Assembly: GCA_038496445.1 (NCBI GenBank)
Contig: JALMLS010000093.1
Coordinates: forward strand, 434,001 to 498,000
Source: Trichosphaerium sp. ATCC 40318
Lineage: Eukaryota; Protista; Tubulinea
Direction of reading: 5' to 3'
DNA: 64,000 bases
The position numbers and the translations under genes are program-made. Numbering within the stretch: position 1 is the first letter of the stretch; the number at the start of each line of letters is the position of its first letter. This document shows positions 13,929 through 24,000 of this stretch, piece after piece. The notes below the pieces were generated by a model. It was not told where the DNA came from. It worked only from the letters and a program-made list of their open reading frames with translations, and made no database searches.

Positions 13929-15092
13929 ATGGAACCAAAATCGAAGGCTAAACCAAGTCACAGGGACTTTAAAACCAAGTCAACAATACCTCATGTTTTA
14001 GACGTTCCAACGGAGATGCTTGCTCACCTATTCGGGTTTTTAGATATTTGTAGTCGCTTTTCCGTATCTCAAAGCTGTAAACGATTCTCAGACATCATAC
14101 ACTGCTTTATTGGTTACGACACAATCAACATTCGATCAACATCATGGTGTTCTCGCCTCTGCGGAAGCCCTCTTCTAAAAAACACAACAATAGTTTTAAA
14201 TTTACGTGAAACAACAGATGAAGACCTCGTTTGCCTTGCTGGTGTTCGTTCTCTCGAACTAGCAAATTCAAATAACCTCACAGCAAAGGGATTCAACTCT
14301 ATCAAAGGAGTTCAACACTTGAGCATCTCAAGGTGTCCAGGATTCAAAGACTCAACATTGGAATATCTTGCTAAAAACCTCAAATCTATTGGCTTGTTTC
14401 AAGTTAGTGTTAGTGATATCACTATGCTGAATGTCTGTAATGGATTCACAGTGAATGATATGAAAGCGCTTGCTGGTATACCTAAAGTGAACATTTGTTA
14501 TACTGGTGTTACAGATGAACTCTTGCATGTCTTGTCCGGAGTACATACAATTGATTTGACTTCTACATTGGTAACAGACAGCGGAGTTTCGGCATTGGCT
14601 GGAGTGCATAGTATTAAGTTAGGTCACTGTAAGTACATTACAGATTTAGGTATTTCAGCTCTGGCTGGTGTGTATGACATTCATTTACAAGGTTGCCAAC
14701 ATATTACCAACAAAGGTATTTCTTCTTTGGCTGGAGTACATACTATTAGCTTGGCATATTGTAGAGGAATTACAGATGAAGGTTTATCGGCACTAGCTGG
14801 TGTGCATACAATAGATTTAACTGGTACTCAAGTAACAGACAGAGGGGTTATGACATTGGCTGGTGTACATGAAATATGCCTTGCTGAAAATAAGGTTATC
14901 ACCCAGAGATGCATGAAAAGTCTTTCAAGTGTTCATACAATAGATATAACAGCAACGTTTGCAACAGATGACTGGCTAAGTCCGCTCACTGGATTAAAGG
15001 TATTAAGCTTAAGTATTCACAATGATTTTACTAAGGGATGCCTCAAAGATCTTAGAGATAAAGGAGTGATACTTTGTTATGACGAAACTTGA
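13929..15092 (+). CDS. Intronless F-box + leucine-rich-repeat protein
   Basis: F-box LDVPTEMLAHLFGFL...VSQSCKRF followed by LAGVHTIDL..T.VTD.G repeats; single 387-aa ORF. Confidence 0.9.
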   Translation: MEPKSKAKPSHRDFKTKSTIPHVLDVPTEMLAHLFGFLDICSRFSVSQSCKRFSDIIHCFIGYDTINIRSTSWCSRLCGSPLLKNTTIVLNLRETTDEDLVCLAGVRSLELANSNNLTAKGFNSIKGVQHLSISRCPGFKDSTLEYLAKNLKSIGLFQVSVSDITMLNVCNGFTVNDMKALAGIPKVNICYTGVTDELLHVLSGVHTIDLTSTLVTDSGVSALAGVHSIKLGHCKYITDLGISALAGVYDIHLQGCQHITNKGISSLAGVHTISLAYCRGITDEGLSALAGVHTIDLTGTQVTDRGVMTLAGVHEICLAENKVITQRCMKSLSSVHTIDITATFATDDWLSPLTGLKVLSLSIHNDFTKGCLKDLRDKGVILCYDET

Positions 15093-15116: not shown

Positions 15117-15520
15117 TTAGGGGTAGCATGCTATTTTAAGTTCAGGTTTTTGTTTGCTGCAACAGAACTGTGATTGAAGGCTTGTGGGTATGACTTGCAA
15201 GCGATAAACACCAGTAAGGGGAAGATTTTGTTTAATATTTATTGATGGTGTTGTGCGACTTCCATCTTCCCTGTATCGCCAGTAAGGCATTTGAAAATAA
15301 TATACAATTTCAGGTATAGGGTGACGGATTATTGTAAATTGTTGCACGTTACAATTCTGGCAAATAGACAATCCAAACTTATTAAGGCATAATACAAAGA
15401 CTGTATAATCTCACTACAAGCATCAAGCAGGATTTGTTTGGCTCTTTGTATGAAAAAATTGTCACAGATATTACTCGTTAATTTGCAATCTTTGAAGAAA
15501 TAGGCCGTGTACTTCACTTC
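15117..15520 (-). pseudogene. Possible degenerate LRR-like fragment
   Basis: Broken ORFs with Leu/Cys periodicity (FFKDCKLTSN, CNNLQSVTL); no consistent intron model. Confidence 0.25.
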
Positions 15521-15918
15521 AATTGTTTTTTTTAGTAATTAAATGAACAAGTCGTAGAAGCGCTGAAAAACGGTCAGAGATTACACCGGAGATCTGGTTT
15601 ACTTTCTTAGTACTCCTCTATTCTGCATCATCTTTGAGGTGTGGTAAAGTTTGAAGTCTAAGAAACTAGTTAGATTACTACAATGAGCCCAAGCAGTACT
15701 TCTATGCAGTTTACAATCATTCTCAATATGCTAGTGATGCAGTAAACATATGCTTCATTTCAACGAATTCGTGGTACCCTTCTTATGGCATTCTCATGAT
15801 TAAACGGATTTTTATAGCACGTGGGATTATGAAACCCCAAAAAAATTGTTATTATGTACATGGTTTCGTTGTTGATTAGGTATTTACATTACATTTCGTT
15901 AAAATTGTTTGTTTGCTT

Positions 15919-17638
15919 TTATAACCCAAAGGCAGAGAAAAATTTGCTTATAAGCTTATAGCGAGGTGGACATTTCTGGGCGACCAACTAAATACAAAAA
16001 GTCAGAAAACTGATTTGCTTTTTTTTTGAAAAATCAAAACTTGCCTGTGCGCCTATTCTTTTGTTTGCCATTATACGAGTTCTAAGTTCTGTTTTCCATT
16101 CAAGTTTCTTTCCAGCATTCTTGAAAGCAACAACAATAGGTTCTCCCTCGTCCAAATGAAGCGTCATACTACATTCTCTGCTAACTCTTATTAAACAAAA
16201 AAAAAAAATTGACAAAACCTCTTCATTAAGACGTACTTTGGTACTACTTTTATGCTATCATCTACTCTATCTGATATTGTATCTATATTTGTGAATAATA
16301 TCTCCATCTTCGGCGTATGTGACTCTTTATCATGGTATATGCGCATGTAATTGTTTGACAATTCACACCATCTTTGCTTTGTTTTTTTTGTTGTACAATA
16401 AAATATTTTACCAGAGTAAACTAAACAGCGATAAGTCCCATGTGTTGTTTTACAAGTGTTAACGTACTCTCTGATTTATCCATTGCACTTATCATTACGT
16501 TTGCAGCCCAGTCATATAGTTTCAGCCATGCTATCTCGAGAGCTTTGGACCACTAAAGACAAGTCAGAAAATAGAACATCAAAAAAAAAAAAAAAAAAGG
16601 GAAAGTTGTTCGTCTTTAAAGCTTACTTTATCGCCCAAGCAGTTTTTTAAACTAAGAGAGTATGATACGCGCATTGTAGCAAAATAGGACTTCTTAACTC
16701 CGTATATACGGTGGGTTACACCTAAAGAAAATAAATAAATCATTATTGATTATTCTGTTTATCCTTACCAAGTTCTTTCGCTGTAGCATGGAACGCAATA
16801 GGATCATTTATTACCTTGACAAACCGGCCAAGCATTTTACCAAAGCTAACGGCTAAAATAGACACCTTTCTATTTTGAAAAGGCCCACGTGTATTAGGGT
16901 CGAGAGAGAACATTGTAGTATACAAACTCCTACAAAAACCGAAAAAATCAGATTAAGACAAATAACCAGTTCGTTTCGCAATTCTAAAATTAAGTCATAC
17001 GCACGTGGTAAATTTCGTAAGACGAGATTCATATTCTGTATCCTTCATGCTCGATGTATCCATTAACCAATCATATGCATCAAGGATGAGTTTTTTTTCT
17101 TTTTCCGAAATATCAGGCGTATGAGAAGTCATTGAAGACACAGACGATATAGACATTGACATATCACGCCCACATAGTCCTTTATCCATAGAACCACTTG
17201 TGTTATATTTTCGTGATATAACAATTAAGTGTCTTTGTACAACAATAGGGAGCTGAAGGCCTTTGATATCACTGGGCGTTATCCTAAAGACAAATCGTAA
17301 GAATTGATTTTACGTATTTTAATTTTTTTTTATTTTTGACGTTTCTCGAAAAGGCACAACACGCGTACCTTGCCAAATGACTTAGTCTAGTAATTAAGTT
17401 TTGTTCTAGCTTGTCTACAATATGTTTAATTTCCTTTTTCTTGTGTTTCACTTTGAGCTCAGAAAATAAATCTGTTATTATATCAGTCATAGGCGTTTCA
17501 GGATCTAAATCTAACGCGTTACGAGTTAGTATGATCACGTTTTCAAAAATACTTTAACTTCAATTTATAAGAGCCCGTATTCGTACCATAGAGATCTGGT
17601 TGGTCTTTAGACCATTTAGATAAGTACGGGCAGGTCAT
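15919..17638 (-). CDS. SAM-like + globin + PH domain fusion protein (8 exons)
   Basis: SAM-like: IVDKLEQNLITRLSHLARITPSDIKGLQLP. Globin: FTTSLYTTMFSLDPNTRGPF...ELGVTHRIYGVKKSYF...WSKALEIAWLKLYDWAANVM. PH: YSGKIF...LSNNYMRIYHD...PKMEILF...AFKNAGKKLEWKTEL. Confidence 0.85.
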
Positions 17639-18424
17639 TCTTTAAGATGTGCGGTCGTTATTGTAAGTTTCCGAGTTTTTGAATTTTATTTTTTTGCGTT
17701 AAGTTTTGCGCTTTTTTGTTCGAGTGTACCACGTGCCTTAAATAAGTGAAATGACTTTCCTCGTTCTTATGAATTACTCCGTCTATATCGGTTCTATACC
17801 CTCAAATTGGCTACATTTTGGCTCAACGTAAATCCGTAAGAAATGACTTCGCATAATGGACACGTTGAGATGTGATTTCTTGTTCTTGAAATGCGAGTCA
17901 TTCATTTCTCGTGGCACTGCAAAGACTTCAAAAAAGCCTTCACAACCCCAAAATATAACCCTAATCTGGCGTTTTATTTTAGTTTTAAAAGTATGTGACG
18001 ACTGTGTACTTCAGGTATTAACAATTTTACCGATGGTTTTACCTCGAGTTACCTACATGTATAATCGCCTTTGGGATAGCTAAGAATGATTTTTACTGTT
18101 AGCAGAAGAACTATGCATACCTCTCTTTACACTCATTAACAATCTCAACAGCATGATGAAGTACGTAGCTATAGTTGAGTGATAGTTAAAGAGGATAAAA
18201 CGCAATTCGCGAATTGGTAAGATAAGAAAATCAACGTTTCATTTATTTTATCCGGTTGGCGTAACTCGCATCACGATGCTTCTAACAGTGATTTAGGATT
18301 TTCTTGACTTATAACAATCATTACGTACACATTCATAACATGGGCCCAAAAAAGCGCGTCGCGAGATAGTTGTTTTTGCGTTCAGTAAGTTGCAAGCAAA
18401 GTGCCAAGTTTTTTTTGTGTTCGT

Positions 18425-19790: not shown

Positions 19791-20633
19791 TCACTTTAAT
19801 ACACAAAGTCCGTCAGGTCCGATAATCTTAGTCATATCTGTAACTACATCTTGAGCAGCCTCTAGAGGTGTTTTAGTTCCTATAGAAGAAGTCCAAACAG
19901 AAACAGCGCGAATGGAACATTTGGCAGATCTATTTAAATGTTCCATTGCTTCCTCAAAGTTGGTTGCACCGAAAGGATCCATCCTAACCATTGCTGCTTG
20001 GAGTGTCTCGTTTTTGGTCTTTTGAGCGTCCTCCACGCTTGCAGTAACCATACCGCCCCATTGATCATTACATGTTTGTATTTGGTCCTTGGTTACTGGT
20101 GTTGCATTACAGGCTTTAACTGAAGAAGTCATGAAATCTAGAACGGCTTCATCCATTTCAGTCGAAATTTTCACTGGACCTCCATACAAAGCGTGTATCA
20201 CTGTGGCATCTATAGCATTCATAAAAGCCCATCCACGTATCCAGTAAGGAAGCTTAGATCCGATATAAGCATTAGGAGTGAAAAAAGCCGGTGTATCGGC
20301 GAGTATGTGGTTGGCGTATCCCAAAGAGAAGTCTATTAATTTCTGGTCACCTTGTTCAAGAGCAATTTTGTACTGACAACCGGCGAATACAATGTTATGT
20401 AATCCGGCTAGTCCTACGCACTTTGATCCTTGATAATATTCTCCGAAGAAGAATGCATCAGGTAGGTAAGCTCCTAGAACAAGTTCTGGACGAGAATTTT
20501 GGCTTATACAATCTTGAGGGTTGGAATTGTCAGCGTTGGTTTCGCACGCGATTAAGGTGTGATATACGGGTCCCCAAGCGATAGAAACGACTATTAGAGA
20601 TAAGAAAACTATAGAAACATGTATATTTAACAT
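19791..20633 (-). CDS. Intronless secreted zinc-dependent phospholipase C/P1-nuclease-fold protein
   Basis: Signal peptide followed by mature N-terminal WGPVYH, then GAYLPDAF, LH and GYANHILAD (zinc-ligand pattern W..H, D, H, HxxxD). Confidence 0.75.
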   Translation of the reverse strand: MLNIHVSIVFLSLIVVSIAWGPVYHTLIACETNADNSNPQDCISQNSRPELVLGAYLPDAFFFGEYYQGSKCVGLAGLHNIVFAGCQYKIALEQGDQKLIDFSLGYANHILADTPAFFTPNAYIGSKLPYWIRGWAFMNAIDATVIHALYGGPVKISTEMDEAVLDFMTSSVKACNATPVTKDQIQTCNDQWGGMVTASVEDAQKTKNETLQAAMVRMDPFGATNFEEAMEHLNRSAKCSIRAVSVWTSSIGTKTPLEAAQDVVTDMTKIIGPDGLCVLK

Positions 20634-21013: not shown

Positions 21014-24000
21014 TTACAAGTCAAGAGGAGAAAACTCTTGTTGGAGTTTCTTATCTTCTTTCTTTTTTGGTTTTTCCAATGAAAATTTCTCGATTGTACA
21101 AGTTGGGTTTGCTTCATAGTATTGATCAATAGCTTTGAATAAAGATTGTTGACCTTTTCAAATAATGGTTAGGTAATGGGAAATGAACGAGAGGTCAACG
21201 AACCACTTCCAAGCTTATTATTTGAAAAAACGAAAGAAACATTCGTTTTATCATTTGTATCACGTGGTTTTAATGTTTTTAGTTCTTCACTAGATTCGTC
21301 TTTTTTTATGATACCAACAACAAAACTAGATAAATCTATAGTATGGACAGGTACGGAGTTTGTATGCGAAAGACAAAAATACATTTGTCTTTTTGTTGCA
21401 GACATTGTCAAAAAATATGTTTGCCAACCGATGTAATGACGTTCACCTTATTTGTAAATAACAGCGTTAGTTAATAATAATACAAGTGGTTTTACTTACC
21501 TTTCTTGGAAGGTATACCAATATTGCACTCAGAGTATCCCATGAACAAAGGTTTTTTTTCTTCATGTGTTTCTAAATCTTCCCTATTCAATGCTAGGTTG
21601 TGAACTTCAGCATTCTACATCATTTAAGTAAGGTTATTTATAATTATAACTTCCAAGGCGTTTCTTAAAAAGTACTAAACTGTGTAGTTTAATATAAATA
21701 CCTTTGGGAGCATTTGAAGACCACGAAATGCTTTAAGCCATAAAAACTTTTCTACTTTTGAAGACGTTCCAACAATAAAAGCTCTCTTTATGCTTTTAAC
21801 TACCTAAATCAACACATGTTAGGCAAGAATTAATACTTAGTATTAGACCTGCGTACCATTAAGAAACTATCTGAGATGCCACAAATATCAGGAAGGTCAC
21901 AAACAACAATGTTATTAGTTGTAAAATGAGCAATTGCCAAGTATGGTTTTTTATGATCTCGCTTGATGTCCTTACAGATAAGCAAACAATCATTAAATAA
22001 GAATAATCTTCTTTTGACCCGCTTGTGTGGTGTAAGTTCTCCTGCTATCAGTACTGCGCCAGTCTTAACAACAAATCGAGACACGTTATCTTTGAACTAC
22101 AGAAAACAGATGAGAAAAAAATGAGAATGTGCAAAACTATTGATTTGTTGTTTTGGCCCAAACGGTTTTTGAATTTTTCGCAAAGGTTTATACTAACAGA
22201 TTGCGCTTACTACAGGAGGAGCAGTATTTCGCATTTCAAATATCACACGTGAAGGTAACAAGTTCTATTTGAAAAAATCATTTTTGAATAAATTTGTTCT
22301 TCAAAAGAGCGTACAGAGGGCAAATCTACAGCATCTATTTTTTCAAGTAGTTTCACTGTATTAAGCCTTGATTGTGATATAAGCTTTAAAGCTTGTCCTC
22401 TTGGTTTTGATATGCTATCCAACTCTAGAAAAGATACATTAGCCTAACTAATAATATTAAATAAATTCCTAAAGATTACCTTTTAGAAACGACTTGTATT
22501 CAGGAGTGACAACTAGCTGTAAGTTCTAAAGAAAGTAAATAATATTACACTAATTTGTATCAGTCACCCTGGCCAGCCGTGTGAAATCGTCAATATAAGT
22601 GTGGAGATTGCACCTAAACAATATTTGTCGGTTGTTAATAAATTTTTGTACATACAAAATGCCTACGAATGTCACGTTCAGACCTATTTAAGCAGTTAAT
22701 CAGACTAAGCTATTGACTAAAAGGTGTACCTTTTCGTTTCCATGCAGGGCCAAACATAGACTCCCAGCTGCTAAAATCTCCTTGAAGCGTATGTTGAGAA
22801 TGCTAAAAAGAAATTATACCTCTGAACCTTTGCAACTCTTACTCATACCATTATATCTTTGTGTATCGAGCTATCCATACTCCCTATAATCTCATATAAC
22901 TTTAAAGCGTCGAAATGTTTATGACATTCAAATGCTTTGCTTCCTATTTCAACAAGAGCACGCCAAACATTTTTTCCTCCTGATTCAATCAAATGATCTC
23001 TTGTGTTTTTTTAGCGCCTTGTACTATTAATAATACGTACGATAGAGCTTGAACAATAGTCTGTGTTAACGCTCTCATGTCTTTTAATTGTTCTAACGCC
23101 TTGCGAAGTTCTTCAGAAGCGAGTTTTGCCGCGAAAATTGGATACAAATACTTTCTAAGCATGATACTTAATGTTCTTATGTGACCTTCCTGGAAAGCCA
23201 TAAGAGCTTTATAGCTTCTCTTTAACTTATCCATCGGATCTGTTGAATCAGTGCCATTATTAACTTCTTTGGATTCATGACTTGTGCTAGCACTAGAATA
23301 CTTCTTCTTCGAAAAATACCCTGCAATAAAATCACTAAACTCCTTATTCTCTTTCTTTTTTTCAATGCTAAGCAAACGATCCTTATCTTTTTGTGATACA
23401 ACAGCACCATCTAAATATCAGTAAGATTTTTATACGCTATAAAATACATTGAAAATATCACGTGACATGGCGCCAAACTCGTTTCAAGTAGAAATTAGGT
23501 AGTTTTCGATAAAGTGCCTTTTGAATCAATGCGTACATGTCATAAGGAGCTGTATTTTCTTGTATGAAGTATTGTCGATTGCAATATCAAAAGGAGAATT
23601 ATCTTTACTATCTTTGTAATTTGGATTCGCCCCATTCTGTAACAAGAACTGCACTACTGTATCAACGCTTTACTTCAATGTAAGCAGCCAAGAAATAAAA
23701 GCAAGGGCATACCTATAAGACACCGCATAATGTAGTGGTGTTTGTCCAAGTGTGGTAGGTGAATTGACATGCTGCGTCAAATCTAAGGCATCAAGATCCT
23801 CAGCAGAGAACAGCTAGATCCGAGTTAGCATGTCTTGTCTCAGAGTCCGAGAGTTACCATTACTCCGATAGCTTGAAACATTTTAAGCTCCAAGTATTCT
23901 CTATCTTGACATTTCATTATATAGTGAAGCGCTGTTTGTCCTTGCTGACCTATTCGACGTCAATCAGGTTTTTCTGCTGTTGTAGCTGTAAATCGTACCT

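Follow-up and report, generated by a model that had tools for sequence, protein, structure and literature searches.

The minus strand of a 64,000-nucleotide stretch of the genome of Trichosphaerium sp. ATCC 40318, a marine, amoeba-like protist (contig JALMLS010000093.1, positions 434,001 to 498,000 of the forward strand; hereafter the window, numbered from its first letter) carries a gene for a 400-residue protein in which a globin domain is followed by a PH domain and preceded by a probable SAM-like helical module. The coding span, 17638..15919, is exactly the one given as 15919-17638 in a preliminary description of the locus; it opens with an ATG at 17638-17636 and closes with a TAA at 15921-15919. 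An in-frame TAA lies two codons 5' of the ATG, which excludes a longer N-terminus. The gene model was first built on the minus strand by combining open reading segments with splice signals, and was then corrected with transcript contigs aligned to 15300-18300. It comprises nine exons and eight introns with a coding sequence (CDS) of 1203 nucleotides (nt), and the surrounding window is AT-rich, with a GC content of about 35-39%. The introns measure 47-85 nt each; seven of the eight are GT-AG, as described earlier for all of them, and the last (16044-15988) is GC-AG, which adds a ninth exon to the eight first proposed. A reading in which exon 8 runs on to a TAG at 15990-15988 was rejected, since all contigs reaching 16044-15988 splice out the GC-AG intron and continue into exon 9.

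The spliced form is documented by contigs from four public runs (X1-X4), which come from four separate studies. We take these runs to be RNA because all eight introns are removed in them; the RNA label of the runs is otherwise a guess. As the evidence consists of contigs rather than reads, it establishes that the spliced form exists and does not give expression levels or exact ends. A 1293-nt contig from X1 and a 1511-nt contig from X4 each span all eight joints and the whole CDS, and the contigs from X2 and X3 contain subsets of the joints in agreement with these two. The X1 contig sets the minimum extent of the transcript at 15862..17671 on the minus strand, which with the introns removed amounts to a 33-nt 5' untranslated region (UTR), the CDS, and at least 54 nt of 3' UTR. 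This contig is identical to an MMETSP contig, L001 (Transcript_6291, a 1290-nt contig, JGI), whose CDS equals the spliced genomic CDS. The MMETSP-derived protein P0001 (400 residues) matches the product of the nine-exon model letter for letter; it was found through an exhaustive phmmer search with exon 3 (100% identity, residues 66-157) and served as the query in later searches.

The gene is expressed, and one transcript encodes the whole protein, as the X1 and X4 contigs bear out for the single transcript that had been assumed from the sequence. Contigs are in principle no proof of a single molecule, and the X4 contig extends into neighboring sequence, both of which would suit an artefact in which the domains lie on separate transcripts or the contig is mis-assembled. 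Such an artefact would, however, have to account for two independent assemblies from different studies that each place one contig across the eight joints, and for the agreeing partial contigs from the two further runs. It would also have to account for genomic exons that are contiguous within 1.7 kb and whose frame is open only when they are spliced. We regard this explanation as highly improbable.

The coding differences seen in the other runs number only two, at 16084 and 16314, and both are synonymous. The X2 contig, which carries a different organism label, shows a 9-nt deletion and one substitution in the 3' UTR (15864, 15903) and only synonymous changes in the coding region, which suggests that its source is a closely related strain and that the gene is under constraint. 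Long A or T homopolymers, up to about 18 nt, occur in several introns (16581-16598, 16194-16210, and 17321-17337), and transcript contigs are apparently broken at 16570-16610. A scan for inverted repeats around the gene returned only the poly-A/poly-T tracts within introns.

The protein is ordered as a SAM-like module (residues ∼28-92), a Ser/Thr-rich linker (94-123), a globin (∼124-268), a PH domain (∼272-372), and a C-terminal tail (373-400). On the minus strand the probable SAM-like helical module occupies 17202..17481, including intron 2; the globin domain 16478..17108, including introns 3-5; and the PH domain 16063..16468, including intron 7. Exon 1 (17587..17638) encodes residues 1-17 plus one base, and its joint with exon 2 (17587/17510) is present in X1 and X4. 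Exon 2 (17369..17510; residues 18-65) holds the first part of the SAM-like module, and exon 3 (17005..17283; residues 65-158) holds its end together with the Ser-rich linker, the globin A helix, and the start of the B helix. Exon 4 (16769..16929; residues 158-212) encodes helices B to F, and with them Tyr161, Phe175, Leu183, and Phe187. Exon 5 (16627..16721; residues 212-243) contributes the F8 histidine, His215 (codon 16711-16713), and the G helix, while exon 6 (16468..16552; residues 244-272) contributes the H helix and is followed by an intron at the globin/PH boundary. Exon 7 (16237..16420; residues 272-333) carries the PH domain's first half, including Lys276 and Lys286-Gln-Arg288 of the β1-β2 region. 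The second half, with the helix residue Trp361, lies in exon 8 (16045..16180; residues 333-378), which precedes the GC-AG intron and whose joint with exon 9 (16045/15987) is found in X1, X2, and X4. Exon 9 (15919..15987) encodes residues 379-400 and the stop, and supplies the basic/hydrophobic C-terminal tail.

The 400-residue protein has no signal peptide and no transmembrane segment, and is cytosolic. Its N-terminus, Met-Thr-Cys-Pro, lacks the Gly2 myristoylation site of the globin X type. Pfam and NCBIfam searches with P0001 returned no enzymatic domain, and nothing significant besides Globin and PH, in line with the absence of an enzymatic output proposed earlier. No Pfam match to FAD_binding_6 or NAD_binding_1 was obtained, the C-terminal half being taken up by PH. 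In NCBIfam, the flavohaemoglobin entry PRK13289 was matched weakly (expectation value (E) 0.0099), and there was otherwise nothing useful.

With P0001, Pfam Globin (PF00042) matches residues 160-262 with E 8.5e-10 and 39.6 bits against a cut-off of 22; residues 120-272 alone score 41.1 bits against the same cut-off, and exon 4 on its own gives E 0.13. A phmmer search against the PDB places three bacterial globins first, 3s1i (E 1.9e-6), 3ubc, and 3wfw, with E up to 3.4e-6 and alignments that run from the B to the H helix. These are followed by plant non-symbiotic haemoglobins, leghaemoglobins, neuroglobins, and Vitreoscilla haemoglobin, with flavohaemoglobin weaker (1cqx, E 0.58). The A helix is covered by the plant non-symbiotic haemoglobin matches, which begin at residue 123. 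A model of the exact protein in the ESM Atlas has a predicted local distance difference test (pLDDT) value of 0.68; over residues 123-272 it superimposes on a 138-residue bacterial globin cluster with a template modeling (TM) score of 0.93, and a flavohaemoglobin cluster is among its structural neighbors. The domain is thus a full 3/3 globin, as first described. Its placement in the flavohaemoglobin family holds as far as a modest similarity to single-domain bacterial globins of the F type (about 30 bits), and no further.

Two alignments to solved globins, HGbI (3s1i) and HGbRL (3wfw), agree on the residues of the haem pocket, with Tyr161 at B10, Phe175 at CD1, Phe187 at E11, and His215 at F8. 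The tyrosine, the CD1 phenylalanine, and the proximal histidine had been named from the sequence, and a leucine had been placed at E7 by manual alignment; indeed, Leu183 stands opposite the E7 Gln of both 3s1i and 3wfw. With Ile182 and Ala184 on either side, a register shift by one residue would still leave a non-polar residue at E7. The distal pocket therefore appears to be non-polar (Leu E7, Phe E11, Phe CD1), with Tyr B10 as the probable sole hydrogen-bond donor. The lack of a distal His or Gln, together with this single donor, would argue against bis-histidyl six-coordination, and a five-coordinate, ligand-accessible iron is favored from the pocket residues. Haem b is predicted to bind through His215.

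A globin this divergent, with no word-level relative in 5.8 billion clusters, could also have lost its haem and persist in a SAM-PH scaffold purely as a spacer with a structural or protein-binding role, and non-haem globin folds exist (PMC8717448). The sequence of the domain speaks against such a pseudoglobin: it retains His F8, Phe CD1, Tyr B10, and Leu F4 along with the usual pattern of the G and H helices, and the Pfam Globin score is well above its cut-off. We consider a haem-free role improbable. The introns of the globin lie at B7 (phase 2), F5 (phase 1), the G/H corner (phase 0), and the globin/PH junction (phase 1), positions that we take to differ from the canonical B12.2 and G7.0. 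Atypical intron positions are known in other protist globins (PMC4101818).

The PH domain announced in the preliminary description is recovered by Pfam PH (PF00169) at residues 283-367 of P0001 with E 3.7e-6 and 27.8 bits, a narrow margin over the cut-off of 25.1. Residues 265-400 alone score 30.5 bits, and exon 7 on its own gives E 1e-4. In the Atlas model, residues 270-400 resemble PH-domain clusters such as SKAP1 with a TM score of 0.53; a phmmer search of the C-terminal part against the PDB gave chance-level matches only. Trp361 corresponds to the usual invariant Trp of the PH C-terminal helix. Reading the sequence further, we find a basic motif at β1/β2 consisting of Lys276, nine residues, and then Lys286-Gln-Arg288, and a Lys-(9 residues)-Lys-x-Arg pattern in this region is typical of phosphoinositide-binding PH domains. 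By the same reading the H helix ends at about residue 268 and the PH domain starts at about 272 (the Pfam PH envelope begins at 283), a gap of about five residues, and an intron falls exactly at this junction. The tail, residues 373-400, has a net charge of +6, and its last 13 residues are amphipathic, hydrophobic, and Phe-rich. A basic amphipathic tail of this kind would add membrane affinity, and together the PH domain and tail are predicted to direct the protein to phosphoinositide-rich membranes.

The linker ahead of the globin was correctly described as Ser-rich, with 37% Ser+Thr over residues 94-123. For the module that precedes it, the SAM-like domain named at the outset stands as a set of consistent weak matches: two Pfam families, SAM_EPH and SAM_2, match residues 43-83 in matching register. 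It does not stand as a family assignment, because every SAM family (Pfam clan CL0003) scores below its curated threshold. Language-model neighbors include three SAM-clan clusters at 0.77-0.82, which is below the reliability line of the tool and makes them leads only. The structural neighbors of the Atlas model include SAM-like and helix-hairpin-helix bundles with TM scores of 0.45-0.59, likewise below the reliability line, and one of these is an Eph-receptor cluster with SAM_1 (TM 0.53). By eye, residues 59-88 follow the SAM α3-α5 pattern (Leu-x-Leu-Thr-x-x-Asp-Leu ... Arg-x-x-Ile). A phmmer search of the N-terminal part against the PDB gave chance-level matches only. On balance, the odds lean slightly toward a SAM-like fold, and a module of this type would be expected to mediate self-association or partner binding.

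Relatives were sought in several collections. The exhaustive phmmer search, made with exon 3 only (residues 66-157), returned no true relative besides the protein itself; three bacterial repeat-rich surface proteins among its matches were rejected on inspection as compositional or repeat artefacts. Word-based searches, which are blind to relatives below about 40% identity, gave only the self-match in 5.8 billion clusters for the whole protein and for the globin region among proteins of 220-700 residues, and nothing for the globin domain alone. A metagenome scan produced 435 pattern matches and 0 confirmed cases in a collection that evidently does not contain this sample, as the gene's own transcript was not returned. 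ESM Atlas clusters of at least 50 members contain no Globin+PH set, and tblastn of the model against the 64-kb window found no paralogue.

Full-text searches of the literature returned no relevant paper in which a globin domain, or a chimeric globin, occurs together with a PH, pleckstrin, or SAM domain; a mention of "pleckstrin" in a paper on globin X refers to a neighboring gene and not to a fusion. A survey of amoebozoan globins likewise makes no mention of globin-PH or globin-SAM fusions (PMC4081604). In the resources searched, then, the architecture has neither a relative nor a description, as had first been suspected, and a globin-PH pair behind a SAM-like module appears to be an undescribed chimeric globin architecture.

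Comparison with known systems shows which features are shared and which are not. The closest solved relatives, the Hell's Gate globins of Methylacidiphilum infernorum (HGbI 3s1i, HGbIV 3ubc, HGbRL 3wfw), share Tyr B10, Phe CD1, and His F8 with the protein at a similarity of about 30 bits; they differ in being bacterial, in having Gln at E7 where Leu183 is found here, and in lacking a PH or SAM partner. HGbRL, the third-best solved relative, joins its globin to a Roadblock/LC7 domain, and so likewise has a small, non-enzymatic regulatory partner. Flavohaemoglobin, weakly similar, also contains an F-type globin with Tyr B10; unlike it, the protein described here has no flavin adenine dinucleotide/nicotinamide adenine dinucleotide (FAD/NAD) reductase module, and its E7 residue is Leu rather than Gln. 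Androglobin is another eukaryotic globin within a multidomain chimera (PMC9249397, PMC13331133), but its globin is circularly permuted and is accompanied by a calpain-like domain and an IQ motif in about 1500 residues, an unrelated architecture.

The frame around the globin recalls the CNK family and yeast Boi1/Boi2, membrane-associated adaptors with an N-terminal SAM, a C-terminal PH, and no catalytic domain (for CNK2, PMC8774548). These proteins have no globin, no sequence relationship to them was detected, and the SAM match here is sub-threshold. Globin X is also directed to membranes, anchored by N-terminal myristoylation and palmitoylation, and a protective role against reactive oxygen species (ROS), or redox role, has been proposed for it (PMC7475203). 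It is, however, six-coordinate, whereas the protein here lacks both Gly2 and a distal His, and in place of acyl anchors it has a putative anchor of PH domain and basic tail.

As a working analogy we use the globin-coupled sensors, such as E. coli YddV/DosC and HemAT, in which a haem globin lies upstream of another domain. This class consists of bacterial and archaeal sensor-family globins with enzymatic or chemotaxis outputs (PMC7475203). The protein here differs from them in matching Pfam Globin and not Protoglobin, in its eukaryotic host, and in its non-enzymatic partners. By the definition of that class (the S family), it has no protoglobin-type globin, and the downstream PH is not a known transmitter. 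In YddV the distal side of the haem carries a Tyr and a Leu, according to references cited in PMC10882959.

The reading that we favor, with a probability of roughly 40%, is that the protein is a phosphoinositide-recruited, haem-based O2/nitric oxide (NO), or redox, sensor-adaptor with no enzymatic output of its own. In such a protein, haem b would be bound through His215 beneath a ligand-accessible distal pocket, and the PH domain and basic tail would take the protein to phosphoinositide-rich membranes. Ligand binding or oxidation could then shift the H helix of the globin, which passes without a linker into PH strand β1, and this shift would alter membrane binding or SAM-type assembly. The altered assembly or membrane binding may in turn change what is scaffolded at the membrane. 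We favor this possibility because a SAM-like module and a PH domain with nothing else make a scaffold frame, because the H helix runs directly into PH strand β1, and because the Tyr and Leu of the distal pocket are reminiscent of the sensor globin YddV. HGbRL, with its non-enzymatic regulatory partner, offers a further parallel, and the purely synonymous coding differences point in the same direction.

A number of observations weigh on the other side. The nearest relatives are F-type globins, which are known for O2/NO chemistry rather than for sensing, and P0001 gave no match to Pfam Protoglobin, the sensor-globin family, at E up to 1. The matches to SAM_EPH (E 0.0075, 16.4 bits against a cut-off of 27) and SAM_2 (E 0.066, 13.8 bits against a cut-off of 20.5) both fall below threshold, and AlphaFold run without an alignment reaches pLDDT values of only 33 (full length) and 50 (residues 1-100). 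Many PH domains have no specific phosphoinositide binding. Finally, the searches above gave no orthologue against which the conservation of pocket, junction, and architecture could be judged.

The same data are fitted about equally well by a non-sensor globin that handles NO and O2 while tethered to membranes. In this case the PH domain and basic tail would hold a working Tyr-B10 globin at phosphoinositide-rich membranes, where it turns over NO, O2, nitrite, or ROS, or protects lipids, with separate reductases recycling it. The closest solved relatives are bacterial F-type single-domain and flavohaemoglobin-like globins, an affinity that fits such a role. Moreover, membrane anchoring of a globin is established for globin X through acylation, with ROS protection as its proposed role (PMC7475203), and a PH domain plus tail could serve as an analogous anchor. 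A tethered working globin is harder to reconcile with the lack of a reductase domain in the protein, with a Leu at E7, where the aligned F-type globins have a Gln that pairs with Tyr B10, and with a SAM-like plus PH frame that, with nothing else present, is typical of scaffolds. We therefore treat it as a serious contender, if still a tentative one, beside the sensor-adaptor.

The surroundings of the gene were also inspected. On the plus strand, at 13929-15092, an intron-less open reading frame (ORF) of 387 residues encodes an F-box (E 8.9e-6) and LRR_6 (E 3.6e-15) and is convergent with the globin gene. The X4 contig runs beyond the 3' UTR of the globin gene through 15605-15817 and skips 44 nt (15773-15816) whose ends are GT..AG on the plus strand. 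The skipped segment, on the wrong strand for the globin gene, may be a 3' UTR intron of the convergent F-box/LRR gene, in which case the two transcripts overlap and were joined by the assembler; alternatively, it may reflect an indel between strains. On the minus strand, 19791-20633 holds a 280-residue ORF whose N-terminus is hydrophobic and which weakly resembles zinc-dependent phospholipase C, below threshold (E 0.004). Further along the same strand, 21830-23375 contains ORF fragments of a multi-exon gene with a PH domain of the SOS1/NGEF type (E 1.7e-6); a RhoGEF of the Dbl family is the probable product.

What is known of haem-based gas sensing in eukaryotes comes mainly from soluble guanylate cyclase and a small number of PAS or haem-regulated proteins, and to our knowledge globin-coupled sensors are regarded as prokaryotic. 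In its boldest form, which we think rather unlikely, the sensor-adaptor would be the first eukaryotic "globin-coupled adaptor," a lineage-specific amoeba family in which O2/NO binding is relayed to phosphoinositide-membrane recruitment and SAM-type assembly instead of to an enzyme. The protein is small and soluble-looking and has a defined transcript, and the sensor-adaptor hypothesis is for that reason directly testable. If the sensor-adaptor reading is true, it would give globins a new output logic, namely, localization and scaffolding in place of catalysis, and a third route to the membrane beside acylation and prenylation. If the protein is only a tethered scavenger, it would still add a new set of partners among chimeric globins and bear on the handling of NO in amoebae.

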